64,000 nt of DNA from positions 124,001 through 188,000 of IMG/VR virus record IMGVR_UViG_3300046092_000062, one strand, 5' to 3'. Made by a program: the position numbers and the translations under genes. The first letter of the stretch is position 1. Each line of letters starts with the position of its first letter. The notes below the pieces were generated by a model, which ran no database searches, was not told the DNA's origin, and was given only the letters and a program-made list of their open reading frames with translations. This document shows, one piece after another, positions 1,862 to 38,693 of the stretch.

Positions 1862-2299
1862 ATGTTCAAACTACAAGCTAGCGAGAGATTAACTCGCTGG
1901 CGTGAATTTCGAAAATCTCTGGATCACCTACCACTAGACAAAGCATTAGCCGAGGTTAATGACTTCTGGTCAGCATGTCCTTTCTCTCCTTACTACCTAG
2001 ATCCAGCCAAGCCTGACGAATGGCCAGATCCGTGGACCATGATCACCGAAAACTACTACTGCGATATTGCAAAAGCATTGGGTATGTTGTATACTATTAA
2101 GTACACCGCGCACAACCCCGACGTTGAGCTACGCATGTATGTCGATCCAGAAACAAAGTACGGTTATAATTTAGTCTGGATTGAGCAGGGGAAATATGTT
2201 ATTAATTTGGTCACTGATGAGATCGTAAATAAAGAACAGGTTGAAAATACATTAAAGTTGAAAGCTACGTTTAGCGATCAACTGCATTTGAATAGATAA
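1862..2299 (+). CDS. hypothetical phage protein
   Basis: 145-aa ORF tightly packed between neighbours. Confidence 0.7.
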   Translation: MFKLQASERLTRWREFRKSLDHLPLDKALAEVNDFWSACPFSPYYLDPAKPDEWPDPWTMITENYYCDIAKALGMLYTIKYTAHNPDVELRMYVDPETKYGYNLVWIEQGKYVINLVTDEIVNKEQVENTLKLKATFSDQLHLNR

Positions 2300-2311
2300 T
2301 AAGAGGAATCA

Positions 2312-4612
2312 ATGAGTCAAATAAACGTCACGAAGAGAGACGGCCGTAAAGAGCCACTAAATTTAGAGAAGCTACACAAAGTTGTTTTTTGGGCAACCGA
2401 AGGAATTACAGGAGTTAGTGCAAGCGAAGTAGAAATCAATAGTCATGTACAATTCTACAACGGCATCAAGAGTACAGACATTCAAGAAACGCTTATCAAA
2501 AGCGCAGCAGACTTAATTAGCGAAGAATCACCAAATTACCAATATGTAGCAGGACGCTTGCTTACATATCATATCCATAAGTTAGTTTATGGAGACTTTA
2601 AGCCATGGCCATTGCTACAGTTAGTTAAACGTAACACTGACATCGGCTACTACACAAAAGAATTGTTAGAAAACTATAGCGAAGACGAGATCAATCAAAT
2701 GGACTCGTATATCAAACACGAACGTGATGAAACATTCACCTACGTGGCTATGGAACAATGGCGCGGTAAGTACCTAGTACAAAACCGTGTCACTGGCGAA
2801 ATCTTTGAAACACCACAAATTGCATACATGTTGATTGCTGCCACATTGTTTATGGCCTATCCAAAAGAAACACGTATGCAATGGATTAAGGACTACTATG
2901 ATGCTATCTCTAATTTTGATATCAGTTTGCCTACCCCTATTATGGCCGGTTTACGCACTCCACAGAAGCAGTTCAGCTCGTGCGTTCTTATCGAGTCTGG
3001 CGATAGTCTCGATAGTATCAACGCTACTTCTAGCAGCATTGTTAAGTATGTCTCACAAAAGGCAGGTATTGGAATTGGTGCTGGACGTATCCGTGCGCTT
3101 GGAAGCCCTATTCGCAATGGTGACGCATATCATACAGGCATCACACCTTTCTTAAAGCACTTTCAAACAGCCACTCGCTCATGCAGTCAAGGTGGCGTGC
3201 GTAACGGCGCAGCAACTATCTATTACCCATTGTGGCACCTAGAAGTTGAAGATATGCTTGTTTTGAAGAACAACAAAGGCACAGAGGATAACAGAGTACG
3301 CCAGATGGATTACGGCGTCCAATTCAACAAATTAATGTACGAAAGACTTATTCAAGGTGGCAATATCACCTTGTTTAGCCCCCACGACTTGCCGGAAATG
3401 TACGATGCTTTCTTTAACAACCAAGAGTTGTTTAAAGAGCTGTATGAGAAGGCAGAACGCAATACCAAGATCCGCAAGAAGACTATTCCTGCTGCGGAGT
3501 TGTTTGGTAAGTTCATGCAAGAGCGCAAGGACACTGGTCGTATCTATTTGATGAACGTGGACCATGCTAACACGCATAGCCCATTCAAAGAAGAGTTGCA
3601 CCCTGTTAAGATGAGTAACTTGTGTACTGAGATTAACTTGCCAACTGTGCCATTGATGGACATTAACGACGAAGCAGGTCGTATTGCATTGTGTACTCTT
3701 TCTGCACAGAACTGGGGTAACGTTAGAAAGCCACAAGACTTTGAACGCATGTGTACTCTAAGCGTTCGTGGCCTAGACGCATTGTTAAGCTACCAGAACT
3801 ATCCAGTTAAGGCTGCTGAGATTGCAACTAAAGAATTCCGCCCATTGGGTAACGGTATTATTAACTTTGCCTACTTCTTGGCCAAGCATGATGTATCCTA
3901 TAGCGATCCACGTGCATTGGCACTAGTTGACGAGTACGCAGAAGCATGGTCATACTACTTGATTAAAGCAAGTGCAGACTTGGCTCGAGAACAAGGTGCA
4001 TGTGAGAAGTGGGACGAGTTGAAGTATGCCGACGGTATCCTCCCAATGGACACACGCAAGAAAGAAGTTGACGAACTAGTTGAACATCAAGAGCGTATGC
4101 CTTGGCGTGCTCTACGTGAACAGATTCTAACTACAGGTATCCGCAACGCTACACTAATGGCCTTGATGCCAGCGGAAACTAGCGCACAGATCTCTAATGC
4201 CACTAACGGCATTGAACCACCAAGAAACTATGTTTCTATTAAGCAAAGCAAACACGGAGTACTAAAGCAGGTTGTACCTGAATTCCGCAAACTAAAGAAC
4301 AAATACGAATTGTTATGGGACCAACGTAGCCCAGAAGGCTACCTAAAACTATGTGCAGTATTACAAAAATGGATTGACCAGGGTATTAGCATCAACACTT
4401 CGTACAACCCTAAGTTCTACGAAGATGAAAAGATCCCTATGAGTGAGATGCTCAAGCACTTGCTAATGTGCTACAAATACGGAACTAAACAACTTTACTA
4501 CTTCAACACAAACGATGGACAAGGCGAGATTGATGTCGACAAGCTGGGCGCTACAACGCAATTACCAGAAGGTGACATGGGTCAAGAAGACTGCGATAGC
4601 TGTGTAATTTAA
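2312..4612 (+). CDS. nrdA: ribonucleotide reductase class Ia alpha subunit
   Basis: ATP-cone (VTKRDG), SSC, SNLCTEI catalytic motif, MPAETS, C-terminal CDSC. Confidence 0.98.
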   Translation: MSQINVTKRDGRKEPLNLEKLHKVVFWATEGITGVSASEVEINSHVQFYNGIKSTDIQETLIKSAADLISEESPNYQYVAGRLLTYHIHKLVYGDFKPWPLLQLVKRNTDIGYYTKELLENYSEDEINQMDSYIKHERDETFTYVAMEQWRGKYLVQNRVTGEIFETPQIAYMLIAATLFMAYPKETRMQWIKDYYDAISNFDISLPTPIMAGLRTPQKQFSSCVLIESGDSLDSINATSSSIVKYVSQKAGIGIGAGRIRALGSPIRNGDAYHTGITPFLKHFQTATRSCSQGGVRNGAATIYYPLWHLEVEDMLVLKNNKGTEDNRVRQMDYGVQFNKLMYERLIQGGNITLFSPHDLPEMYDAFFNNQELFKELYEKAERNTKIRKKTIPAAELFGKFMQERKDTGRIYLMNVDHANTHSPFKEELHPVKMSNLCTEINLPTVPLMDINDEAGRIALCTLSAQNWGNVRKPQDFERMCTLSVRGLDALLSYQNYPVKAAEIATKEFRPLGNGIINFAYFLAKHDVSYSDPRALALVDEYAEAWSYYLIKASADLAREQGACEKWDELKYADGILPMDTRKKEVDELVEHQERMPWRALREQILTTGIRNATLMALMPAETSAQISNATNGIEPPRNYVSIKQSKHGVLKQVVPEFRKLKNKYELLWDQRSPEGYLKLCAVLQKWIDQGISINTSYNPKFYEDEKIPMSEMLKHLLMCYKYGTKQLYYFNTNDGQGEIDVDKLGATTQLPEGDMGQEDCDSCVI

Positions 4613-4621
4613 GGAAACAAC

Positions 4622-5752
4622 ATGAGCGTTTTTAACATCAACAACAAAAAGAAGCATACCGAAGCACTCATGTTCCTGGACCCAAGTGGTCCAGTGACAG
4701 TGCAACGTTACGAAACACTAAAGTATAGACAATTTGACAAACTAACTGATAAGCAGTTGGGATTCTTTTGGCGACCTGAAGAAATTGACATCGTTCGCGA
4801 TAGCAAAGACTTCAAGGAACTAACAGAGTTTGAACAGCATATCTTTACTAGTAACCTAAAGCGACAAATCTTATTAGACAGTGTGCAAGGACGTAGCCCA
4901 ACGCTGGCGTTCTTGCCATTGGTATCTATTCCCGAATTGGAAACTTGGATTACCACATGGGCGTTTAACGAGACTGTTCACAGTCGTAGTTACACTCACA
5001 TTATTCGCAATATCTATAGCAACCCTAGCGAGATCTTTGATGGCCTAATGGACATTGAACCTATCGTTAATTGTGCTAAGGATATCTCTAAGTACTATGA
5101 TGACCTCATTGAGTACGGTGGCTTCTACAATTTGCTAGGTGCTGGTGTACACACCATTAACGGCAACGAATTTGAAGTTAACCTGTACGAACTAAAGAAG
5201 AAGCTGTGGCTTGCTATCAACAGTGTTAACGCACTAGAAGGCATTCGCTTCTACGTTAGCTTTGCTTGCTCGTGGGCGTTTGCAGAACTAAAGAAGATGG
5301 AAGGCAATGCCAAGAACATCAAACTTATCTGCCGCGACGAGAACGTACACCTTGGCTCAACACAGACCTTGTTGAAGTTGCTACCACAAGATGATCCTGA
5401 CTTTATTAAGATCAAAGAAGAGACACGCGAAGAATGTACTCGCATGTTCTTGAGCGCAGCACAACAAGAAAAGACTTGGGCTGAGTATTTGTTTAAAGAC
5501 GGATCCATGATTGGTCTAAACACTCAATTGCTTTGCCAATACGTGGACTGGTTGACTTGCAAGCGCATGACTGCCATCGGTCTAGACTGCGGCATCGCAA
5601 AGCCTAGTTCTAACCCATTGCCTTGGACTGCTAAGTGGATTGCTGGTGCCGACGTACAAGTTGCGCCACAAGAAACTGAGATTTCATCTTACGTGGTTGG
5701 TGGTACAAAACAAGACGTTGACTCAAATACTTTTAGCGGCTTCAGTCTCTAA
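4622..5752 (+). CDS. nrdB: ribonucleotide reductase class Ia beta subunit
   Basis: FFWRPEE, ETVHSRSY, LEGIRFY, DENVH diiron motifs; VAPQETEISSY tail. Confidence 0.98.
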   Translation: MSVFNINNKKKHTEALMFLDPSGPVTVQRYETLKYRQFDKLTDKQLGFFWRPEEIDIVRDSKDFKELTEFEQHIFTSNLKRQILLDSVQGRSPTLAFLPLVSIPELETWITTWAFNETVHSRSYTHIIRNIYSNPSEIFDGLMDIEPIVNCAKDISKYYDDLIEYGGFYNLLGAGVHTINGNEFEVNLYELKKKLWLAINSVNALEGIRFYVSFACSWAFAELKKMEGNAKNIKLICRDENVHLGSTQTLLKLLPQDDPDFIKIKEETREECTRMFLSAAQQEKTWAEYLFKDGSMIGLNTQLLCQYVDWLTCKRMTAIGLDCGIAKPSSNPLPWTAKWIAGADVQVAPQETEISSYVVGGTKQDVDSNTFSGFSL

Positions 5753-5777
5753 GATAATTATAATAAAAGAGGAAACT

Positions 5778-6020
5778 ATGTTAACAATTTATTCAAAAAG
5801 CAACTGCCCTTTCTGTGATCGTGCTAAGGCACTAATCGAAAGTAAGGGCATTGAGTACAAAACCATCAGCATCGAAGAAGATCAGGACGCACGCCAACAC
5901 CTACTAGACATGGGACTACGCAGCGTACCACAAATTTTTTCAGGCACAACTATTATTCCTGGCGGCTATCAAGGCATCGCAGGTAAAGACGAAGAGTTCT
6001 GGACAACATTAAAAGGATAA
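5778..6020 (+). CDS. glutaredoxin
   Basis: CPFC and SVPQIF motifs; ATG 5778 after GAGGA. Confidence 0.92.
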   Translation: MLTIYSKSNCPFCDRAKALIESKGIEYKTISIEEDQDARQHLLDMGLRSVPQIFSGTTIIPGGYQGIAGKDEEFWTTLKG

Positions 6021-6021
6021 C

Positions 6022-6333
6022 ATGCTAGTAAGTCAACAATACGCATCAGGTGATGTAGTGAGTTTCAAAATGGTCAACGGCGATGAAGTTGTTGCCAAGG
6101 TGTTAGAAGTAACAGACGAGGGCTGGAAAGTAGCTAGTCCTTGCACAGTTATGCCAAGCCAACAAGGCCTTGGTCTAATGCAGAGTTTGTTCAGTGCTAA
6201 AGAAGACTGCAAAGTTTTCATCAGTAAGCAACACGTTATGTTCCATGCTGAGTCATTGGAACAAATGCGAGTGCATTATGTTAAGACCACAACTGGTGTT
6301 GACGTAATTGCCAAACCTGGAATCATTATCTAA
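6022..6333 (+). CDS. conserved phage protein (possibly Sm-like fold)
   Basis: 103-aa beta-rich ORF, KMVNGDEVVAK. Confidence 0.55.
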   Translation: MLVSQQYASGDVVSFKMVNGDEVVAKVLEVTDEGWKVASPCTVMPSQQGLGLMQSLFSAKEDCKVFISKQHVMFHAESLEQMRVHYVKTTTGVDVIAKPGIII

Positions 6334-6620
6334 TGCCAGCAGCAGCACGCCTAAATGATGCAGACACTAGCGACGGACAAATTTGTGGCGACGTTAGTAC
6401 TGATGTTATTATCAACGGGCAAGGTGCTGCACTAGAGGGGAGCCTAGACAGCAGTCATGCTCCTTACGGCGCCCCTCATCCCCCACATGAAGCCGCGACG
6501 GTTACTACCGCTAGCAGCACAGTAATTGCCAATGGCAAAGGTATAGCCTTTGTTGGCAGTGATCTCAGCTGTGGCCATGCTATTGCAGCAGGTAGTCCTG
6601 ACGTGGAAATTGGGTCATAA
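6333..6620 (+). CDS. PAAR-motif baseplate spike tip protein (T4 gp5.4-like)
   Basis: Starts MPAAARLND; CGH motif; GSPDV end. Confidence 0.88.
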   Translation: MPAAARLNDADTSDGQICGDVSTDVIINGQGAALEGSLDSSHAPYGAPHPPHEAATVTTASSTVIANGKGIAFVGSDLSCGHAIAAGSPDVEIGS

Positions 6621-6641
6621 GTATTATAATAGGATACTTTT

Positions 6642-8222
6642 ATGAGTGGAATTAGTCCAACAATGATGATCGCCGCTACTGGTTTTACTAACAACCAGGG
6701 GCTAGGCGTAAGTAGTGCAATGCTAACAGCATTAACCAATTTTGATAACAGCCCAGTGGTCACACTGTACACTGGTGTTATTTCTGCATTGGATGGTGCA
6801 AACGTTGCATTACCAACTATGCCAAATTACTTCACAGGTTTGTCTGGTGGTGAAACTGGCACGAGCATTACTAACAGCATTAGAACTGCGGCAACAGCAA
6901 TTGCTCCAAATACACAAAAGTTTATCAGCAACTTCAACAGTGCTAGCACCTTTGCACAAACCAGCTTTACTTGGTCTGGTGCATTAACTGGCGCAGCATC
7001 TGCGAGCTTTGACAGTTTTGGTCTTGGCATTTCTAATTTTAGTCAGATGGTGTCCGGCGGTGTTGGTACCATTATGGCAGGCGCCAATGGCGCGACAGCA
7101 GACTTCACAGCACTGTCGAGTACTATAACTAAATTTGGATCTGCATTTGATTCTAGTGATCCGCAAAAGATGTTTGACCCAGCTGGCTTTGTGAGGAACC
7201 TGCAAAAGCAAGGTCTCGGTGACGTAGGCGGACTAGAGGACAAGCTGTCTGAGGCTGGACTTGACCCAACTAATTTGGATTCTGCAAATCCCGAAGTCAT
7301 TAAACAGGTGCTAGAAACAATCACAGGATTAGACGTAGCAAAGATCATTAGTCAAACAAAAATGATCTTGCCGGCTAACACTATGATATCTTCAGCAGCT
7401 GATCTTCTCAATGCTAAAAAGATTGTGAGTCCCAGTGAGTTGTCTGCTCTACCAGGCGGTAGTTTGGATGGGCTCGGTAACGCACTATCTAACATGGGCG
7501 GCAAGTTTAAAACAGCAGCAGCAATGGCAGCAAGTTTAGCAGCAACTAAAATTCCATCCCTTAAACACCTAGACGCATTGAGTTCTCCTATGCCGGCTAG
7601 CATTTCATCTGCACTATCTAGCAAGCTAGGCGCAGGTGGAGGACCATTTGGTAACCCCACTATTAATGATATTATTGGCACTGCCGCAGGATACAAACAT
7701 ACCGAAGGCTTTACCACTATAGTGGCCGCACATACTGCGATTCTACAAACCAGTGAAGGACAGTCACTGGAGTCTGCGGCAAATGACTTAATTGCAGATC
7801 CGTCAAACCCATCTACATTAAGTGCATTCGTTTCCGCGCAGGCAGCAGTAACTGGTGCAACTAACCCAACGCTAGCTAAATTGATCAGTGACAGCAGTGC
7901 TGCCATTACTGCAAGTCAGACTCAATTAACCACCGAAGCTACAAATCAAACCAAAGCAGGCTTTGTTCCAAGTGCAGCCACTGTTCCGGCAGCGCCAGCA
8001 CTGCTAGGACTTGCAAACAAGTTGCATGACTTGGGTCTCGATAAACAACAAGTAGGATACAACTTCCTATTCAGCAGCATGGCCACTGACGACCAGTACG
8101 GCGATGCAATCAAGGCAGCACTGTCAGAAGGGCAAAACATTGCCAAATCTGCAGCCGCTGGCATTGCTAACACAACCAAAATTGACCCAATGGATGTGCT
8201 GGCAAAGATCCAAAAGGGGTAA
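6642..8222 (+). CDS. Ala/Ser/Gly-rich probable virion (baseplate/tail) protein
   Basis: 526 aa, follows PAAR gene, structural-type composition. Confidence 0.55.
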   Translation: MSGISPTMMIAATGFTNNQGLGVSSAMLTALTNFDNSPVVTLYTGVISALDGANVALPTMPNYFTGLSGGETGTSITNSIRTAATAIAPNTQKFISNFNSASTFAQTSFTWSGALTGAASASFDSFGLGISNFSQMVSGGVGTIMAGANGATADFTALSSTITKFGSAFDSSDPQKMFDPAGFVRNLQKQGLGDVGGLEDKLSEAGLDPTNLDSANPEVIKQVLETITGLDVAKIISQTKMILPANTMISSAADLLNAKKIVSPSELSALPGGSLDGLGNALSNMGGKFKTAAAMAASLAATKIPSLKHLDALSSPMPASISSALSSKLGAGGGPFGNPTINDIIGTAAGYKHTEGFTTIVAAHTAILQTSEGQSLESAANDLIADPSNPSTLSAFVSAQAAVTGATNPTLAKLISDSSAAITASQTQLTTEATNQTKAGFVPSAATVPAAPALLGLANKLHDLGLDKQQVGYNFLFSSMATDDQYGDAIKAALSEGQNIAKSAAAGIANTTKIDPMDVLAKIQKG

Positions 8223-8352
8223 GTTAACTTACCATATTACTCGCTTTTCAGCGAACTAATTGCTATAATAGTATCAGTTATTGAGTTATAGCAGTTGTTT
8301 ACTTTGATCCTATAGGGTTATATAAACAACAGACAGAAACAAAGGAGAAAGT

Positions 8353-8928
8353 ATGACACTTAAAACGTCAAACAGCAAACAAGATTCTTGGATTGCTCTT
8401 TCTAGAAATGTTGTCCAATTTCTAGCACTAGTTGCAGTTGTATTCCTGGTATGGAATGTAACCACAGCAAAATTTAACACCCTACGCGAAGGTAGCGAAG
8501 CATACAGACAGGGTTTTGTGAGCGCAGCAGATCGTTCCCAACAATTAGAATGCCTAACACGCAATATCTATCATGAGGCTGCAACTGAGCCATTTGAGGG
8601 CAAAGTAGCAGTAGCACAAGTAACCATGAACCGTGTAGACAATGGCCGTTTTGGTCACGGCGTATGCGGAGTAGTTTATCAAAAGAATGTAATTTACGAA
8701 AAGGTCATTTGTCAATTTAGCTGGGCTTGTATTCCGGGCGTAGGTAAGAAAGTAATCTATCCAGCGTTGTATAAAGAAAGCGAAGAAGTAGCCAAAAAGG
8801 TTCTATTGGAAAACTTCCGTTTGCCGGGCATGAAAGACGCAATGTACTACCATGCAGATTATGTCAACCCAAAGTGGGGTAAACCGAAAATCACACAAAT
8901 CGGCCACCACATTTTCTACAAGGACTAA
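8353..8928 (+). CDS. SleB-like cell wall hydrolase (Hydrolase_2) with N-terminal TM anchor
   Basis: CLTRNIYHEA, VAQVTMNRV, CQFSW, YYHADYVNPKW, IGHHIFY. Confidence 0.92.
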   Translation: MTLKTSNSKQDSWIALSRNVVQFLALVAVVFLVWNVTTAKFNTLREGSEAYRQGFVSAADRSQQLECLTRNIYHEAATEPFEGKVAVAQVTMNRVDNGRFGHGVCGVVYQKNVIYEKVICQFSWACIPGVGKKVIYPALYKESEEVAKKVLLENFRLPGMKDAMYYHADYVNPKWGKPKITQIGHHIFYKD

Positions 8929-8929
8929 A

Positions 8930-9247
8930 ATGAAAAAATTCGACATCAATGCAATTAAAGCATCCGTTGTGAGTTACTTTGAAAATCACTTTCATAAGAT
9001 TTCAGCAGACAGCTTAGAGTGGTTGGCAATCATCATTATCCATTGTGCCACTATCCCTACCTTGCTAGCAATGGTAACAGCATTAAGTGATCGGGCTCCT
9101 AGCCTTGATGTGGTATTGTTTGCATGGGGCGGTCTAGTGTTATTGTTCTTCCGTGCCATCTTACTGAAGAACAGTTTAAACATCATCACAAACGGCATGG
9201 GCTTTATCACCCAGGCAGTAATTATGGCATTTATTCTTTTTAAATAA
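8930..9247 (+). CDS. small 3-TM membrane protein (SemiSWEET/PQ-loop-like)
   Basis: Three hydrophobic helices; Pro after TM1, Asn in TM3. Confidence 0.55.
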   Translation: MKKFDINAIKASVVSYFENHFHKISADSLEWLAIIIIHCATIPTLLAMVTALSDRAPSLDVVLFAWGGLVLLFFRAILLKNSLNIITNGMGFITQAVIMAFILFK

Positions 9248-9248
9248 T

Positions 9249-9461
9249 ATGAGCGATATCGAAGACGACGAAATTGATGTAGTTGATGCAGACATAGCAG
9301 ATGATGATTATGTTTTTATTATCGGCCCAGACGGGAATCTAAAGCAGATACTTTTGCCAGACGAAGTTCCGTTTGAGCTGCCGGAAAACATTAACAAAGT
9401 GCTAGCAGTATTCAATGTCAATGACGTTGAGAGTTTAGTAGTTAGTCCAACAATCCATTGA
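9249..9461 (+). CDS. acidic hypothetical protein
   Basis: 70-aa ORF abutting previous gene. Confidence 0.65.
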   Translation: MSDIEDDEIDVVDADIADDDYVFIIGPDGNLKQILLPDEVPFELPENINKVLAVFNVNDVESLVVSPTIH

Positions 9462-9503
9462 CCCATAATGGGATTGGTGTTACAATAGTTCAAAGGAAGC
9501 AAA

Positions 9504-9692
9504 ATGAACGCTCGAGATTACACACAAAAACAACGTGATCAAATTCATTATCTGCAAAATGCAGTTTGGGACTTGGAAAAAGCCCGGGAAAACTTGGTTA
9601 AGGCAAATGGTAGTACTTCGGTATTACAAGCAGTTGATGTTGCTTTGGAAAAGGCCAACTCTGAGCTAAATGACGCTTCTACGCTGATGTAA
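9504..9692 (+). CDS. hypothetical protein
   Basis: AAGGA RBS; TTGACC-17-TACAAT promoter upstream. Confidence 0.65.
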   Translation: MNARDYTQKQRDQIHYLQNAVWDLEKARENLVKANGSTSVLQAVDVALEKANSELNDASTLM

Positions 9693-9721
9693 AAGTAGTA
9701 CTCAAGTACTAGAAATTTCGG

Positions 9722-9750
9722 TTGACCTGAAATGGTTTTCTTGCTATAAT
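9722..9750 (+). promoter_or_regulatory. sigma70-type early promoter (TTGACC-N17-TATAAT)
   Basis: Member of a repeated promoter family, consensus GGTTGACCCGAAATGG-N8-TATAAT. Confidence 0.85.
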
Positions 9751-9756
9751 ACATAC

Positions 9757-10083
9757 ATGCAGAAAACAACAGTTACCCGTAAACGCAGACAAGATACTAA
9801 ACATGCTGTCTATATGTTAGTAAACACTAACACAAATGAAAGCTACATTGGTATTACTGTTTGCGGTAACCAAGTTCGCAAAGCCCTTAAAGTTCGTTTC
9901 CAAAAGCATGTGCGCCGCGCACTGACTGAAGACAAATCTTGGGCATTGTGCGAAAGCATTCGTGAACACGGTGCAGAAGCGTTTGCAGTGTTGTTGGTTG
10001 ATGTTGTGCGTGGTCGCAAGCCAGCACACAGCGTTGAGCGTGAATTGATTAACGGTAACAAGCCCGCACTGAACACTCACTAA
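9757..10083 (+). CDS. stand-alone GIY-YIG nuclease domain protein
   Basis: AVYMLVN...SYIGIT, R..KH, terminal ERELI...LN. Confidence 0.75.
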   Translation: MQKTTVTRKRRQDTKHAVYMLVNTNTNESYIGITVCGNQVRKALKVRFQKHVRRALTEDKSWALCESIREHGAEAFAVLLVDVVRGRKPAHSVERELINGNKPALNTH

Positions 10084-10092
10084 GGAGTTAAC

Positions 10093-10290
10093 ATGATGGT
10101 TATGGTAGCAAAAATGAAGGACAAGATTGTTCAAATTGTGCGCTATGCTGACACAGTTGGCTTCAGCGACGAGCGCGGCTGGTTCTGTATCTGCTTTGAC
10201 TTTGACAAGCAAAACAGACGCCGTGAACAAATCAAGTGGATCCCAGCAGACACTCGCTTTGAGTGGGTGCGTGAGTACATCGGGGAATAA
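10093..10290 (+). CDS. hypothetical protein
   Basis: AAGGAG RBS, 65 aa. Confidence 0.65.
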   Translation: MMVMVAKMKDKIVQIVRYADTVGFSDERGWFCICFDFDKQNRRREQIKWIPADTRFEWVREYIGE

Positions 10291-30553: not shown

Positions 30554-31309
30554 ATGCGTAGCACTATACTTATTTTGGCATTACTTGCCAGCAGCATTAG
30601 TTGGGCGAAACCTGCCACAACTATCGACGACACTAGCGACCTTACTGCAAAGTCCTGGCTCATTGCAGACGAACAAAACCAAATCCTAGCCAGTAAAGAC
30701 ACTGGTACCATACGCCCAATGGCCAGCATTACCAAGGTAATGACTGTGCTAACAGTGATGGAAGCAAAACAGGATCTAAATCAATCTATAGCCTACAATC
30801 GAACTCTACGCCTAACTAGGCAAGAGCTTATCAATCTTGCAATAGTCAAAAGCGACAACCATGCAGCAGACCTGCTATGCAGACATTACGTGGGCGGGTA
30901 CGGCAATTGCATCAGCGATATGAATGCTAACGCTATGAAGTACGGTATGCGACATACTAACTATGTTGATGCTACTGGATTGCTAGCAGACAATACCAGC
31001 ACCGCAGAAGATTTGTTACTGTTATTGAACGTAGCAGAGAAGAATTATCTTATTGTGGACTCGGCCACCAAGACCAAAGTGGAAATTAAGAACAAGAAGA
31101 AATGGTTGATCTTTAAACAAACCAATCCCTTAATAGGTCACAAGCACAAGTTCATTGTTAGTAAGACTGGTACCACTAACGCAGCAGGTGGTTGTATCAT
31201 TTTAACAGTTGAAACAGAACGCGGCCTGCGCCGCGTTGTTGTGTTGGGTAGTAAGAACGGTAGAACCCGTATACCTGAAGCTGAGTTTATCTACAAGCAA
31301 GTAGACTAG
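30554..31309 (+). CDS. peptidase S11 D-Ala-D-Ala carboxy/endopeptidase (PBP7-like)
   Basis: Signal peptide; SITK, SDN and KTG motifs. Confidence 0.92.
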   Translation: MRSTILILALLASSISWAKPATTIDDTSDLTAKSWLIADEQNQILASKDTGTIRPMASITKVMTVLTVMEAKQDLNQSIAYNRTLRLTRQELINLAIVKSDNHAADLLCRHYVGGYGNCISDMNANAMKYGMRHTNYVDATGLLADNTSTAEDLLLLLNVAEKNYLIVDSATKTKVEIKNKKKWLIFKQTNPLIGHKHKFIVSKTGTTNAAGGCIILTVETERGLRRVVVLGSKNGRTRIPEAEFIYKQVD

Positions 31310-33730: not shown

Positions 33731-33898
33731 ATGAAAGCCTTGGGTATCATATTAACACTACTGTTACTTGATGTCTTTATTCAAGATGTGCTAGAGTACC
33801 CCCGTGACATTCAAGCAGTGATCGAACAAACAGCACTTCAATGTTTAGGGATTGCAGTGTACCATGCTTTTTTTCGTGGAGAGCAAGATGCTGGGTAA
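33731..33898 (+). pseudogene. 55-aa ORF resembling the N-terminal remnant of a SleB-like hydrolase
   Basis: TM then LQCLGIAVYHAFFRGE, versus LECLTRNIYHEAATE in 8353-8928. Confidence 0.4.
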
Positions 33899-34085
33899 AG
33901 TCAAGTGGTTTAGTGCCCAACGAGGGTACGGATTTATCATTGCATACCCATCGTTAGATGAAGTGTTTGTTCATTACACTAACATCATTAGCGATGGATT
34001 TCAAGTACTAACAAAAGACCAGCTAGTGGAATTCACCATTAGTAATGGCAGGGCTGCAAACGTTACTAAGATCAGTTCAGAGTAA
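33888..34085 (+). CDS. csp: cold-shock domain protein
   Basis: GKVKWF, RGYGFI, VFVHY, V.F, AANV. Confidence 0.9.
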   Translation: MLGKVKWFSAQRGYGFIIAYPSLDEVFVHYTNIISDGFQVLTKDQLVEFTISNGRAANVTKISSE

Positions 34086-34476
34086 CTTTTGGTTCTGGGC
34101 CAAGCCAGCGTGTGTCACGCATAACTGTGCGTAACTGAAACTTGTTCTTGCCCATCTTAATAAACGGGATATTCAAATTAGTGTGCGGATCATAGAATAC
34201 TAAGTTAGTACCGTCAGGCTTTGCTCTGAACAAATGCAAGCCTCTATTAATGATTCGACCAAATGTGTCAATTAACATACCAGGCTCGATCCTACTCATA
34301 CCACGTTTAGCCAGTAACTGATCAAAGAAATGGTCTTTAATATCTAATCGTATGCCAATATGATTTGCATAGTCTTGCACAGCCTTAATCGATAGGTACA
34401 ACGAGCGAGTGCGCTCTTCTGTGTAATAGGGATCTTGCGGCCAATCGCTATGCTCAAGTAATTCTTTTATTTTCAT
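34072..34476 (-). CDS. late protein with MKIKE leader, putative RNase-like domain
   Basis: HFFDQ...R...I, D..TNLNIPF, RTVMR. Confidence 0.55.
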   Translation of the reverse strand: MKIKELLEHSDWPQDPYYTEERTRSLYLSIKAVQDYANHIGIRLDIKDHFFDQLLAKRGMSRIEPGMLIDTFGRIINRGLHLFRAKPDGTNLVFYDPHTNLNIPFIKMGKNKFQLRTVMRDTRWLGPEPKVTLN

Positions 34477-35171
34477 ATGGTTCCTAGTACGTCGTGATAC
34501 CAAGGGTCAATGATAACTGGCGTACCATCTGCACGTTGCATAACGTTTTCTGTATGCAAGTCCCATCCCCAACCTTTATGTGCGCCTAGTCTAGCTAGAA
34601 TGACCATAGTAATGTACAGGGCTTCGTAGTAGCTTTGCTTACGATGGTCCATGAACTCGTTATGCACTAGTTCCGGAACATCAGGATCGCCGCCCCAGTA
34701 ACGCCAGAGATCACTTTCAGTCATGAAGTCATCTAATACCTCTTGCCATCTGAGTTGACGGGCAGCACACTCACTCATAATCCAAACAATACCTTGTAGC
34801 GCAGTACCAGCTGGAATAGGTTGCAAGCGTTCCATGGCAATTTGTCTAAACTGTTCGCCGTCGATCTCGAAACGTGTATGGTGTTGCCCTTGAATCTTAA
34901 CAAATCTTGGCAAGAATGGATTTGGCTTGCTAGTGGTTACGTATTGATAAAAGTCCAGGAATGTCTTTTCACCTGTACTTAACTGTCCACTCTCTGGCAT
35001 AAGGATTTTAATCACAGTGTGAGCGTCTTTTGCATAGACTGAAGCGTCTGCGCCTGCGCCCAACTCAGTATATCCCGCAGCCTTCATTACTTGCTCAATC
35101 TTGTCACGGTGATCACTAGTGATTAATTCATCAAGTACTTGGGCTTCTGTTAAAATTTCGTTTATTTTCAT
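34473..35171 (-). CDS. Ser/Thr protein kinase-like protein with MKINE leader
   Basis: LGAGADASVY Gly loop, VIKI, MERL, DLHTENVM catalytic loop, IIDP. Confidence 0.8.
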   Translation of the reverse strand: MKINEILTEAQVLDELITSDHRDKIEQVMKAAGYTELGAGADASVYAKDAHTVIKILMPESGQLSTGEKTFLDFYQYVTTSKPNPFLPRFVKIQGQHHTRFEIDGEQFRQIAMERLQPIPAGTALQGIVWIMSECAARQLRWQEVLDDFMTESDLWRYWGGDPDVPELVHNEFMDHRKQSYYEALYITMVILARLGAHKGWGWDLHTENVMQRADGTPVIIDPWYHDVLGTI

Positions 35172-36325
35172 CGCATGTTCATCGCTACAGTGTACTCTTT
35201 GAAGTTGTGCAAGCGATCTTGCAGTCCTCTGAGCGCAGGGTTAATATATTTAGTGACCGTGGCAGTGTCATTGAAGTTGTGTACGTTAGGTCTAACGCGA
35301 GTTTGCCAATACCACACTGCAATCTTGGCAGCAATTTCTGGGTTAGCAGCAAGCTCTGGCTTTTGCTCTAACGGCAACCCTAACGCTTTTCCTGCCATGC
35401 GATAGTTGTCGCGTCCGGTGATTTGAATAAAGCCACGACCGTGATACCTAACTCCGTCCCCTGCATGTGTATTGCCCAAGGTCTTAGCCATACCCGGTGC
35501 AGCCTTGGGGTCGTAACGCTTGTGGAAGTACTTGGCGCCGCCGATCTCCTTCATTCGTGTAAAATCTGCACTTTCGTGACGTGTTTGTGCCATGAATTGT
35601 GCTAGTTCTGCCCCTTTAATGCCTGCTCTGATAGCAGTACGTTGTAGAGTATGCTCGGGCCCCATATTCATACTCACCCCAAATGTGTCTGGTTGTGCTA
35701 CTTTTGGAGTTGCTACTTTAGGTTGTGCAGCTTTGGCTACATGGTGTGCTGTTGCCTTAGGTTGTGCATGTGGCGCAGATTTAGCATCAGCTGCGCCACC
35801 ACCTAACGCCATGCCCGCAGCAAGTGCGCCAGTAGCAGCCCAGTCTTTCCATCCCTCTTCAAGATCTTGTGCAGAATAAATGGCATCTAGTGCATCGTCT
35901 AGCTGTCGCAACGGAATTCCTGCGTTGTTGTATCCGCGTTCCAATCGAGCAATATACGCATCGTTTGGTTCTGTGCCTTGCATGTACTCACGAGTCTCCG
36001 GAGTCATTGTATAGATCTCTGCTTCGTGGCGCTTTCCATTGGCAAATACTGGAACTGTTTTGCGATCGTATAAACTTGGGTAGCCCTCTGTTTGGTCCAG
36101 TTGAGCAAGTAGCTGTCTATCGATTGCCCACAAGCTACCAATTACTCTAGCTCCGGGATATGGAAATACGTTGGCATAAGTGAACATTTCAAACACAAAG
36201 TTCTTTAGCTCTGCACGACTAACAAATTCTGCACCGGGCATCAGTTCTGGGTCTGTTAACATGCCGTAGGCAAAATAGTATATAGGGGCCGCGCCAGCTT
36301 CGTCTAGTACATCTGTGATTTTCAT
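35168..36325 (-). CDS. gamma-glutamylcyclotransferase (AIG2-like) fused to a GH19 lysozyme/chitinase
   Basis: YFAYG, LDQTEGYP..Y (GGCT); FMAQTRHES, YHGRGFIQITGRDNY (GH19). Confidence 0.85.
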   Translation of the reverse strand: MKITDVLDEAGAAPIYYFAYGMLTDPELMPGAEFVSRAELKNFVFEMFTYANVFPYPGARVIGSLWAIDRQLLAQLDQTEGYPSLYDRKTVPVFANGKRHEAEIYTMTPETREYMQGTEPNDAYIARLERGYNNAGIPLRQLDDALDAIYSAQDLEEGWKDWAATGALAAGMALGGGAADAKSAPHAQPKATAHHVAKAAQPKVATPKVAQPDTFGVSMNMGPEHTLQRTAIRAGIKGAELAQFMAQTRHESADFTRMKEIGGAKYFHKRYDPKAAPGMAKTLGNTHAGDGVRYHGRGFIQITGRDNYRMAGKALGLPLEQKPELAANPEIAAKIAVWYWQTRVRPNVHNFNDTATVTKYINPALRGLQDRLHNFKEYTVAMNMR

Positions 36326-36332
36326 ACTGTAT

Positions 36333-37454
36333 TTAGTAAGCCAATATACGGTTTAAGTTCTGCAAGTCTGCAGGGTTGTAGGGAATGTTGCACTCAGTTA
36401 ATGCGCTACCTAGTTTGTCTGTTAACTCGTTTACTACCAGTGGACGCATGGTAGTATAAAAGTGGTTAAAGTTGTATTCTAATATTTCAGCCATTGCTAA
36501 TTTCATTTGCACCAGTTCTTCGTGCGTTTTATTACATAGATCTTCAAGTATAGCTAGCACCGCATCAAAGCGATCGGCACTGTTAGTAATAGTGTCGTAT
36601 CCCTCGTCCCAGAATTCCCCAAAGGTACGAAAGCCATACTTGCGCAAGTACGCCAAATTGCCAGCGCCAGCTAACAACAAAAAGGGCATCTTAGCCACAA
36701 TCGGCTTAAAGATCTTTTCAGTTAGATGTTGTTTATTTTCGTAGAAGATGGTTTCAGTAACTAGATTTACAAATGCCTTTTGCATATCCGCAACATTGAC
36801 CGCTGCACTAAGCTCTCCGCGTGGGTCGCTGGTGTCTATTATCATCTGCTTTTCAAGCAGGTGCATATGAGATCGAATGTTTGTTTTGTGAGGTTCTGGT
36901 AGCCATTGGTACGAGTTAGTAGAAGCCTCAATACTTTTAACATCAGCTGTATTGTAACTCACATATCCTTTCCCTACTAGATCTCTTTTCTGCAATTCGA
37001 TTACCAAGTTGGCGCGGTACAAACGTTTGTCTAATGTTAGATTGTTATAAGTAATATATGTGCGTTCAAAATCGGTATTGACATTTATGTTGTCGTACCA
37101 ATGCAATCTATACCATTCGTGACACAACAGTGCGTGATAAAAATACTGGACATCTTTCAAATTGTAATCATTACACAGTTTGTCGCTTTCTGTGCTATAC
37201 TCACTGGTTACTAGTACCCGACAAGCTGAAAAAGATTGAGAATACGATCTATAGAGTTCAATGTAAAATTTAGTAACGTCTATAGGTTCTTGGTCATAAA
37301 AAATAACAGTAGGTTTAAGTACAATCGGATAAGACGTCGATTTTGAAACAAAGTATATACGATTTTGATTAAACACAGGACACAATAACGCAATGCCCGA
37401 TTTATCAAAAAAGTGATCTCTCATTACATTATAGAAAAAATCAAAAGGAATCAT
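36333..37454 (-). CDS. putative glycosyltransferase-like protein
   Basis: LVTET, TEKIFKPI, GFRTF..FWDE.YD; paralogue of 43074-44165. Confidence 0.55.
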   Translation of the reverse strand: MIPFDFFYNVMRDHFFDKSGIALLCPVFNQNRIYFVSKSTSYPIVLKPTVIFYDQEPIDVTKFYIELYRSYSQSFSACRVLVTSEYSTESDKLCNDYNLKDVQYFYHALLCHEWYRLHWYDNINVNTDFERTYITYNNLTLDKRLYRANLVIELQKRDLVGKGYVSYNTADVKSIEASTNSYQWLPEPHKTNIRSHMHLLEKQMIIDTSDPRGELSAAVNVADMQKAFVNLVTETIFYENKQHLTEKIFKPIVAKMPFLLLAGAGNLAYLRKYGFRTFGEFWDEGYDTITNSADRFDAVLAILEDLCNKTHEELVQMKLAMAEILEYNFNHFYTTMRPLVVNELTDKLGSALTECNIPYNPADLQNLNRILAY

Positions 37455-38693
37455 ATGTTAAGCAAGAAAATTGGATTTATTGGAATTGGCAAGTTAGGGA
37501 TGGCGTGCGCCGAAGTGATGGCCGAAAAGCATTCTGTTACCGGCTATGATATTTACCCCAAAACCAGCAACAAGATCAAAATTGTCAACCAACTTAAAGA
37601 TGCTGTACTCGGTCAAGACATTATTTTTGTTGCAGTACAAACACCACATGATGCTAAGTATGGCGGCGCCAGCCCAATTGCACATTTGCCTAACGTAGAC
37701 TTTAACTACGATGTAGTTGAGCATGTGCTTAAACAGATTAACTGTTGGGCAAGACCAAATCAAATGGTTGTGTTAATTAGCACAGTACTACCAGGAACAG
37801 TGCGTGGACGATTGCGCCAACACATTACTAATCCACGTTTCATTTACAACCCTTACTTAATTGCAATGGGCAGTGTGGAGTGGGATATGGTTAATCCTGA
37901 GATGGTTATCATTGGAACAGAGGACGGCGATGTTACAACTGATGCAGCAGAGCTAATTGAGTTTTATAAAGGACTGATGCAAAACAATCCACGTTACGAA
38001 GTTGGTACATGGGACGAAGCGGAATGTATTAAGGTGTTTTACAACACATTCATTAGTGCCAAGATCGGATTAGCTAACATGATCCAGGACGTTGCTATCA
38101 AGCAAGGCAATATTAATGTGGATGTCGTGACTGATGCACTAGCAAGATCTAGTATGCGAATCATGGGGCCAAAATACATGACAGCAGGAATGGGTGATGC
38201 CGGACCTTGCCACCCACGTGACAACATTGCATTACGTTACATGGCAGAGAAGTTGGATCTAGGGTACGACCTGTTTGATGCTATTATGAATGCACGAGAA
38301 ATTCAAGCACGTAACCTAGCTAAGTTTATCGCTGACGAAGCCAACAATGCGTTGCTGCCAGTTTATATTCACGGCAAAGCATACAAGCCGGACGTGGACT
38401 ACTTAGAAGGCAGCTATAGTTTGCTAGTTGGACATTTTCTAAAACAGGATTTTGGCATCACACCGCACTATGTTGATCCACTAACAGAAGAACTTAATCC
38501 CAAATCTGTTAAGGGCGTTGTGCTACTTGCACACAATAGAAAAATCACATACGGGTATGCGGGCGAAGAGAACGAGCAGGAACTCTACTGCAAACTTAAC
38601 GAAGGTAGTATTGTAGTTGACCCATGGCGTCAATACGCTACTGCTCGCACCGACATCAAGGTCATCCACTATGGCAATACACGCAAAGTATAA
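37455..38693 (+). CDS. ugd: UDP-glucose/GDP-mannose 6-dehydrogenase
   Basis: GIGKLG, AVQTP, STVLPG, AE.IK..YN, GPCHPRD. Confidence 0.9.
   Translation: MLSKKIGFIGIGKLGMACAEVMAEKHSVTGYDIYPKTSNKIKIVNQLKDAVLGQDIIFVAVQTPHDAKYGGASPIAHLPNVDFNYDVVEHVLKQINCWARPNQMVVLISTVLPGTVRGRLRQHITNPRFIYNPYLIAMGSVEWDMVNPEMVIIGTEDGDVTTDAAELIEFYKGLMQNNPRYEVGTWDEAECIKVFYNTFISAKIGLANMIQDVAIKQGNINVDVVTDALARSSMRIMGPKYMTAGMGDAGPCHPRDNIALRYMAEKLDLGYDLFDAIMNAREIQARNLAKFIADEANNALLPVYIHGKAYKPDVDYLEGSYSLLVGHFLKQDFGITPHYVDPLTEELNPKSVKGVVLLAHNRKITYGYAGEENEQELYCKLNEGSIVVDPWRQYATARTDIKVIHYGNTRKV

Follow-up and report, generated by a model that had tools for sequence, protein, structure and literature searches.

Within the 64,000-nucleotide stretch of the IMG/VR virus record IMGVR_UViG_3300046092_000062 that was analysed here (positions 124,001 to 188,000 of the record; hereafter the window), one minus-strand gene encodes a protein of 385 amino acids (aa), P0001, in which a gamma-glutamyl cyclotransferase (GGCT) domain and a glycoside hydrolase family 19 (GH19) muramidase domain are joined by a short acidic motif, a segment with features of an export signal and a linker. 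The contig to which the window belongs, 320,767 bp in length, is that of a T4-superfamily jumbo phage and is found in many freshwater metagenomes. In phage T4 itself, the prohead protease gp21 cleaves after Glu in the motif L/I-X-E (PMC9026906), and internal proteins are carried into the prohead by means of a capsid-targeting sequence (CTS) of 10 aa, MKTYQEFIAE (PMC8442874). Based on the features described below, P0001 appears, on a slight balance of probability, to be a capsid-targeted polyprotein from which cleavage in the prohead yields a GGCT effector and a muramidase with an unmasked export signal. More tentatively, and with considerable room for doubt, head-packaged enzymes of such phages may have masked Sec or Tat signals that are unmasked by the prohead protease, a virion-borne muramidase then being sent back to the periplasm by the export machinery of the next host; that this inside-out delivery belongs to a wider scheme, with L-x-E joints by which T4-like jumbo phages package strings of effectors as one precursor, is put forward as a similarly doubtful possibility.

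Domain architecture of P0001 and its internal segment

The open reading frame (ORF) of P0001 is open throughout, and its translation runs, in order, through a 9-aa leader, the GGCT domain, the tripeptide L155-E-E157, a hydrophobic stretch of 24 aa, a linker and the GH19 domain (Table 1). Both enzymatic halves are recognized by Pfam above the curated cut-offs, with GGACT at residues 17-112 (E 1e-12), AIG2_2 at residues 60-139 and Glyco_hydro_19 (PF00182) at residues 237-349 (E 1.7e-13; 51.4 bits against a cut-off of 25.5), the GGCT profiles PF06094 and PF13772 scoring 49.1 and 34 bits against cut-offs of 22.8 and 27, respectively. Searches against PHROGs likewise returned an endolysin family (phrog_181, E 1.7e-40) and a GGCT family. 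An AlphaFold2 model built on a 45-sequence alignment folds residues 11-150 and 220-385 as confident domains, with a predicted local distance difference test (pLDDT) score of ~90 or higher (>90 for GGCT); residues 155-214 fall below 50, and the first ten residues also score low, with a short helix at 3-9. In Foldseek comparisons, the GGCT half matches human GGCT (3cry/2rbh; TM 0.64, probability 1.0) and the GH19 half matches phage endolysins (9ms7, TM 0.70; also 4ok7). The GGCT motifs Y20-G-M-L23 and E80 (in LDQTEGYP) are kept across the family consensus and presumably serve in substrate binding and catalysis, respectively, while E251 and E260, within HESADFTRMKE, line up with GH19 endolysins in PDB sequence matches and are taken by us to be the catalytic residues of that module. 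The phage context, together with the fact that the nearest solved relatives are endolysins, points to peptidoglycan rather than chitin as the probable GH19 substrate.

The possibility that the fusion arose as an assembly artefact was ruled out, since P0001-like proteins at 95%, 82%, 68% and 51% identity are encoded on other contigs and the GGCT/GH19 junction is spanned with zero differences by a contig of a further, independent sample of fresh water. A near-identity DNA search against phage records gave no match, and the sequence occurs in none of the RNA runs searched, all matches being to freshwater DNA metagenomes.

Between the two domains lies the stretch ...AQDLEE/GWKDW...GGGAADAK, in which the slash marks the predicted cut. 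An original prediction, made from the sequence of the window, had described a GGCT domain that ends at AQDLEE and is followed by a signal-like segment, a Pro/Ala linker and GH19, and this arrangement is borne out by the ORF, Pfam and PHROGs alike; the positions then given for the segment, about 35843-35866, hold junction residues 154-161, and the segment itself runs down to ~35783. Residues G158-A181 contain the most hydrophobic 17-residue window of P0001, yet weakly so: the Kyte-Doolittle mean is 1.25, and the insertion energy on the Hessa scale is positive, so that the hydrophobicity is too low for a stable membrane anchor. The muramidase had also been called membrane-targeted; given the conserved A-x-A and this weak hydrophobicity, a cleavable signal is likelier. 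Signals of the Sec and Tat (twin-arginine) kinds work at an N-terminus. A Sec-type core (W162-A179) and an A-x-A end, with a predicted signal-peptidase site at A179-D-A181/K, are both present in residues 158-181; an N-terminal location and a positive n-region are not, as the segment begins at residue 158 behind acidic residues, and the n-region that a cut after E157 would leave, GWKD, has a net charge of 0 plus a free amino group. On these features, residues 158-181 qualify as a cryptic signal only. The Tat motif S/T-R-R-x-F-L-K does not occur in P0001 itself. Of its three [LIV]xE sites, two lie in flexible module borders, with their Glu at E9 and E157, and one in a buried beta-strand. An internal translation start at the junction was excluded: the codons there read CTT GAA GAG GGA TGG, the only ATG in the vicinity is out of frame, and one has to go as far as the hydrophobic core to meet an in-frame Met.

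The joint and the putative signal across phage proteins

The conservation of the joint was surveyed in the 120 best homologues of P0001 (121 proteins when P0001 is counted). In 67 of the 120, E/GW[KR][DE] is followed by an Ala/Gly-rich uncharged stretch, and in a further 44 a twin-arginine signal, [LIV]-x-E-D-[LMI]-S/T-R-R-G-F-L-G-A..., stands at the equivalent place, several of these with a Pfam TAT_signal match. Within the GWK-type junctions, the P1 residue is Glu in all 67, P3 is L/V/I in 62/67 and P2 is D/E in 62/67, and an A-x-A follows the segment in 60/67, mostly +24 residues from the cut. Among the Tat-type homologues, [LIVT]xE occurs within 8 residues in 44/44 and A-x-A in 43/44; here too the signals can be internal, at positions 84, 157, 181 and 298. 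What precedes the junction ranges from a bare leader of 9-14 aa to as much as 410 aa, and comprises at least 10 unrelated N-terminal domains, including GGCT, ART-PolyVal (ART, ADP-ribosyltransferase), cytidine deaminase, GNAT, DUF6934, PF18905 and, by sequence reading and without a family match, a HAD-like domain. By this comparison, conservation of the [LIV]-x-E junction ahead of the GH19 module is independent of its upstream context, and the order GGCT-junction-segment-GH19 is more than chance, since junction and segment recur in 67 of the 120 homologues and a Tat signal substitutes for the segment in 44.

The modules themselves can be shuffled. Homologue P0018 has the reversed order leader-signal-GH19-GGCT, with L-N-E directly before its GGCT module, and an exhaustive search with residues 1-157 recovered the GGCT module in N-terminal, internal or C-terminal positions within proteins of 157-1323 aa. 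Among the sequences that allowed it to be placed, this module is nearly always preceded by [LIV]xE-AG..PIYYFAYG, and the next module often comes directly after another [LIV]xE. Hundreds of related phage proteins share the joint of P0001, which thus appears to be a general means of packaging several enzymes in a single precursor.

Reuse of the joint-plus-signal module was also seen beyond GH19, so that the refuting condition set in the original prediction, lack of reuse with other exported domains, is answered: the motif recurs before GH24, before LysM-GH19 and before a different domain in the same genome. A back-translated scan of viral contigs for EGWKDW gave 118 matches, of which 65 are in frame and followed by an uncharged hydrophobic stretch, the remainder looking like chance. 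In these 65 cases, the module sits 8 to 625 residues from the N-terminus, and the cargo behind it consists of GH19, LysM plus GH19, two kinds of GH24 phage lysozyme (PF00959) and a few unassigned domains. All of the cargo that can be assigned to a family acts on peptidoglycan. One more GWK carrier has a domain weakly similar to the envelope proteins FlgT_N/LPP20/CsgG, and its contig encodes a gp21-type protease. A protein search with residues 148-190 alone gave five matches, all among known homologues. The genome of the present phage encodes a second GWK protein (G000:C1:254358-255623; L016:1859-3124), 421 aa in length, with a variant of the leader, the joint L-S-E/GWKD, a hydrophobic stretch and an unrelated 290-aa domain for which there was no Pfam match and no usable Atlas match; its neighbours encode a RelA/SpoT-type HD protein (614 aa) and an HExxH plus nucleotidyltransferase protein (366 aa). 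Yet another carrier, P0272 (L051:1104-2432), has two V-x-E/GWK joints and a hydrophobic signal after the second only, ahead of LysM and GH19; because nothing hydrophobic follows its first joint, GWK may be a part of the joint and not of the signal. The genes adjoining P0272 likewise begin MRA.E....

Taken with the signal-peptidase-type end site, the interchangeability with Tat signals and the peptidoglycan-acting nature of the assignable cargo, residues 158-181 are best read as an export signal, and the resemblance of the middle segment to a signal peptide, first noted in the original prediction, is upheld on the same grounds. A [LIV]xE directly before the segment, a gp21-type protease and CTS-like leaders would together provide a simple way to expose it.

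Predicted packaging and processing, and the alternatives

The components needed for processing in the prohead are encoded on the same contig. A prohead protease of the gp21 family lies at G000:C1:811-1449 (PF03420/Peptidase_S77, E 5.6e-27), accompanied in the genome by a coiled-coil scaffold protein and a gp23-type major capsid protein. The scaffold protein contains 17 [LI]xE sites in 368 aa, and of the five in the capsid protein, four fall within the first 42 aa and a single one within the other 349; such a pattern is as a retained T4-like specificity would produce, and a gp21-family protease and a scaffold core with L/I-x-E sites are thus found together. Supporting evidence, though no more than that, comes from the mature GH19 module, in which [LI]xE is depleted five- to six-fold (19 observed vs 112 expected in 110 homologues); of the thirteen patterns tested, V.E alone was lower (5 vs 52; other controls 0.36-2.3). 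No PF03420/Peptidase_S77 match was obtained in the close relative G001 (354 kb, L017 contig; GGCT-GH19 95% identical), though it is supposedly complete; the region may be masked or the gene split by contig ends.

Targeting to the prohead is suggested by the leader of P0001, which, like that of T4-type internal proteins, is about 10 aa long and ends in L/I-x-E (MKITDVLDE). Leaders of this CTS-like kind stand at the start of 114 of the 121 family proteins, with forms such as MKSYEFINE and MRANEFI.E in relatives. Across the whole genome, a strict leader pattern finds eight ORFs, in every case at the ORF start, and a looser pattern adds two; among the proteins so marked are a second kinase-like protein, a GNAT plus DUF6934 protein, a DUF6321 protein, an 800-aa LysM protein and several without an assigned function. 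Three of these genes are coupled here, the kinase-like gene overlapping the GGCT-GH19 gene by 4 nt (ATGA) and a third gene following, likewise with an ATGA overlap (Table 1), and clustering of the kind seen for T4-type internal proteins is thereby found. On the related contig L013 (NCBI MAG contig JBMFGG010001611.1, 347.5 kb), at 2033-10156, at least 10 consecutive genes have an MRA.EF..E or MKS.EF..EA leader and encode GNATs, DUF6321, a GH19 module, an ART-like N-domain, LysM and LysM-lysozyme2. Judged by their domains (kinase, GNAT, DUF6321, LysM), the leader-bearing genes appear effector-like, and they are clustered like the T4 internal-protein locus. Both LysM proteins of L013 bear the leader and are without a signal segment.

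Based on these sequence features, the 9-aa leader would act in the manner of the T4 CTS and carry the precursor to the prohead core, and the prohead protease would then cut after E9 and E157 to yield free GGCT and a GH19 enzyme with an N-terminal export signal. Both products are proposed to be retained in the head and to pass, together with the injected DNA, into the next host, where GGCT would work in the cytoplasm on a gamma-glutamyl substrate (glutathione or some other), and GH19 would be exported, by a Sec-type route for P0001 and by Tat for the RR variants, with removal of the signal after A181, and reach the peptidoglycan; retention and injection, along with these last events in the next host, are the least certain steps. 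The original prediction had a head protease release a cytoplasmic GGCT and a muramidase from one gene product. Its proposal of a head protease gains from the [LIV]-x-E before the segment and the gp21-type protease in the genome, but the implied release in the cytoplasm of the producing cell needs correction: the leader had gone unnoticed, and because the T4 head protease acts inside the prohead on CTS-bearing proteins, both products would be encapsidated and delivered to the next host.

Several observations weigh against this mechanism. It is hard to see what would be gained by exporting a muramidase so soon after injection, and the host cell could be damaged prematurely. The stand-alone Tat-type homologues could be exported uncut, some GH24 carriers of the module have no obvious MRxxEF leader, and P3 is Thr in 5/67 of the GWK-type junctions. 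No T4-type late promoter was found upstream of the minus-strand GGCT-GH19 block in a scan of the window. The counts behind the depletion of [LI]xE in the mature GH19 module come from related sequences. Finally, the nearest cultured relatives by capsid protein are Vibrio phage 2.275.O, PA5oct and the CBB/BF group of giant phages, and neither PA5oct nor Vibrio phage 2.275.O (capsid identity 65-69%) has the GH19 module or a DUF6321 leader protein, so that published mass-spectrometry data are inapplicable.

Other explanations of P0001 differ in where the protein is cut, if at all, and in which cell the muramidase acts. It might be an uncleaved bitopic membrane protein, held by an internal signal-anchor (N-in, C-out) or by a segment like those of signal-arrest-release (SAR) endolysins, with GGCT at the cytoplasmic face and a periplasmic GH19 as an accessory endolysin of the producing cell. 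The Gly/Ala-rich, weakly hydrophobic segment does resemble SAR domains, GH19 is a common endolysin fold, and the gene lies outside the structural gene block, with no late promoter seen. Such a protein is nevertheless unlikely, if the least so of the alternatives, since the segment is not hydrophobic enough for a stable anchor, the conserved A-x-A suggests its removal, and no explanation would be given for the invariant [LIV]xE ahead of the segment, the leader resembling the CTS, Tat motifs located as far as 298 aa into the protein or the [LIV]xE before GGCT in the reversed order. Moreover, a canonical endolysin is already present: the probable lysis genes (C1:239839-240928; L002:1198-2287) encode a GH19 endolysin of 208 aa that lacks a signal and, next to it, a spanin-like membrane protein of 153 aa. 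This pair rules out the GGCT-GH19 gene as the sole endolysin, and, given the separate signal-less enzyme, P0001 need not be the lysis enzyme. Processing by the host alone, in which Sec recognizes the internal signal sequence and signal peptidase I cuts after A-D-A to leave a periplasmic GH19 in the producing cell, would account for the retention of A-x-A in about 90% of homologues and for cargo that is always periplasm-acting. However, post-translational export through SecA or Tat depends on a signal at the N-terminus, and an internal segment of such low hydrophobicity, preceded by 150-600 aa of folded domain, makes a poor substrate for the signal recognition particle. The acidic residues before it (P2 D/E in 62/67) further disfavour export, the leader and the [LIV]xE borders go unexplained, and this route is regarded as somewhat less likely again.

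Two further possibilities keep the prohead cut or the virion and change what follows. If the prohead cleavage acted as a lysis timer, unmasking the signal in the producing cell so that extra muramidase is exported during head assembly, the same junction evidence would apply, the export would gain a clear purpose, and no delivery to the next host would be called for. Against this, T4 gp21 substrates are confined in the prohead, where fragments of such size stay (PMC9026906), and the domains joined to the module (kinase, ART, GNAT, deaminase, GGCT) resemble effectors of host takeover, sensible only if delivered; the timer is accordingly rated as improbable as processing by the host alone. An entry lysin, whose cleaved hydrophobic N-terminus inserts from the periplasmic side at ejection while GH19 opens the wall without any host export, would suit a genome that lacks a T4-type (gp5/e) lysozyme domain and would agree with the closest cultured GH19 relatives, which lie within large, virion-type multidomain proteins of 839-953 aa (Synechococcus phage S-B68, IME392). 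It is the most improbable of the four, for the precise Tat consensus (S/T-R-R-x-F-L) in 44 homologues and the conserved A-x-A are difficult to account for without Tat/Sec action from the cytoplasmic side and signal peptidase. The 839-aa protein of S-B68 (L035, 16223-18742) has, by eye, hydrophobic Gly-rich segments and a VanY/M15-like peptidase motif and, given these, would be a tape-measure-like virion lysin.

Relation to known systems and genomic surroundings

The closest parallel to the proposed capsid-targeted polyprotein is offered by the T4 internal proteins IPI-III and Alt, which share with it a short 9-10-aa leader ending in L/I-x-E and the company of a gp21-family protease, a gp22-like scaffold and a gp23-like capsid protein. 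The T4 internal-protein locus also resembles the present clusters in that its unrelated clustered proteins have only the leader in common, and Alt is an ADP-ribosyltransferase, a likeness in effector enzymes to the ART fusions of the present family. Unlike the T4 proteins, the modules here are strung in one precursor with internal L-x-E joints, and one of them carries a putative export signal that the predicted cleavage would make N-terminal. Secreted and SAR endolysins (e.g. P1 Lyz and fOg44 Lys44) likewise have a muralytic enzyme behind a Sec-dependent, often Gly/Ala-rich, N-terminal hydrophobic segment. Their signal occupies the genuine N-terminus, and lysis is the task of the enzyme itself. 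In the present family, the signal lies internally or follows an acidic leader, and there are Tat variants; the genome moreover encodes a GH19 endolysin of its own that has no signal, with a spanin-like neighbour. The virion-associated lysins T7 gp16 and T4 gp5, which are ejected from head or tail, also carry a wall-degrading domain in the particle, but they work during penetration, from the periplasmic side, for which an export signal is not required. Flavivirus-type polyproteins resemble the present case in that one precursor gives products on both sides of a membrane; their internal signal works co-translationally and is cut by host signal peptidase, whereas a prior cut by a viral protease is the likelier way to expose the signal here.

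Polyvalent proteins, encoded by phages and conjugative elements, are strings of host-directed enzyme domains (ART, GNAT, kinase, RelA/SpoT-type HD, lysozyme) that are predicted to be injected along with the DNA and processed into units (Iyer et al. 2017, PMC5512222), and weak Kinase-PolyVal and ART-PolyVal matches occur in the present family. For them, processing by an in-built MPTase metallopeptidase was proposed, whereas the joints here match the prohead protease motif; P0001 has two domains and no MPTase, and its GGCT-module relatives reach the 1323 aa noted above. Neither GGCT, GH19, signal peptides nor capsid targeting is mentioned in that paper (PMC5512222). Literature searches on Tat endolysins, on GGCT in phages and on GH19 in jumbo-phage virions returned no description of the arrangement. 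The parts are known, from the T4 CTS and gp21, Alt-like injected effectors, polyvalent proteins and secreted/SAR endolysins, and their combination was not found in the literature searched. If the proposed mechanism is right, the new elements are L-x-E-delimited polyproteins in a T4-like jumbo clade, a portable cassette of joint plus Sec-like or Tat signal, and a signal masked until capsid maturation. T4 capsid targeting and processing would then extend from small single internal proteins to modular polyproteins, leader and L-x-E joints would form a sequence grammar that predicts injected effectors in uncultured jumbo phages, and proteolysis within the capsid could re-programme the destination of a protein in the next cell, a kind of re-targeting for which the searches gave no phage description. 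The portable cut site and signal cassette, in its Sec-like and Tat versions, may also serve T4-based protein delivery.

Table 1. Features of the GGCT-GH19 gene, its coupled neighbours and promoter-like motifs, in window positions
Feature	Position	Strand	Basis or remark
Whole ORF, 385 aa + stop (P0001)	35168..36325	-	Leader-GGCT-junction-signal-linker-GH19 precursor
Leader MKITDVLDE, residues 1-9, ends L-D-E	36299..36325	-	Resembles T4 capsid-targeting sequence
GGCT domain (GGACT/AIG2-like), residues 10-150	35876..36298	-	YGML and LDQTEGYP..Y.R motifs, Pfam, AlphaFold2, Foldseek
Predicted prohead-protease site L155-E156-E157, cut after E157	35855..35863	-	Homologue conservation
Putative cryptic signal peptide, residues 158-181: GWKDW, Ala/Gly/Leu/Met core, A-D-A	35783..35854	-	Sequence comparison
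Pro/Ala/Lys/Gln-rich basic linker, residues 182-218 (~37 aa)	35672..35782	-	Sequence; pLDDT <50
GH19 muramidase domain, residues 219-385, putative catalytic E251 (HES) and E260	35171..35671	-	Pfam, PHROGs, PDB matches, Foldseek
Kinase-like 232-aa protein, leader MKINEILTE	34473..35171	-	phrog_15752 protein kinase; weak Kinase-PolyVal match
Third coupled gene, 134 aa from ATG at 34476, leader MKIKELLE	34072..34476	-	ORF and leader
TATAAATA copies	20219, 29959, 40093, 49767, 50602, 51542	+	Exact motif scan of window

Near the block, a D-alanyl-D-alanine carboxypeptidase (30554-31309, +; Peptidase_S11, E 3.8e-32) represents a second peptidoglycan-remodelling enzyme, which has a classical Leu/Ile-rich N-terminal signal peptide and no leader; as this enzyme of the same phage uses an ordinary N-terminal signal, the masked-signal arrangement is special to the leader gene class. 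Exact copies of the T4 late-promoter-like motif TATAAATA occur six times in the window vs 2.9 expected, all on the plus strand and most directly upstream of ORFs, and scans of the window for sigma-70-like promoters and terminators gave background levels. Next to the probable lysis genes, the gene after the spanin-like one encodes a leader-bearing DUF6321 protein, a family annotated as 'structural protein' in some T4-like cyanophages. A UDP-glucose/GDP-mannose dehydrogenase-like gene (37413-38693, +) is divergent from a 373-aa gene without a family match (36333-37454, -), and the called starts of the two overlap, their true starts being uncertain. A cold-shock domain (CSD) gene (33852-34085, +) lies in a gap of ~780 bp within the minus-strand block.

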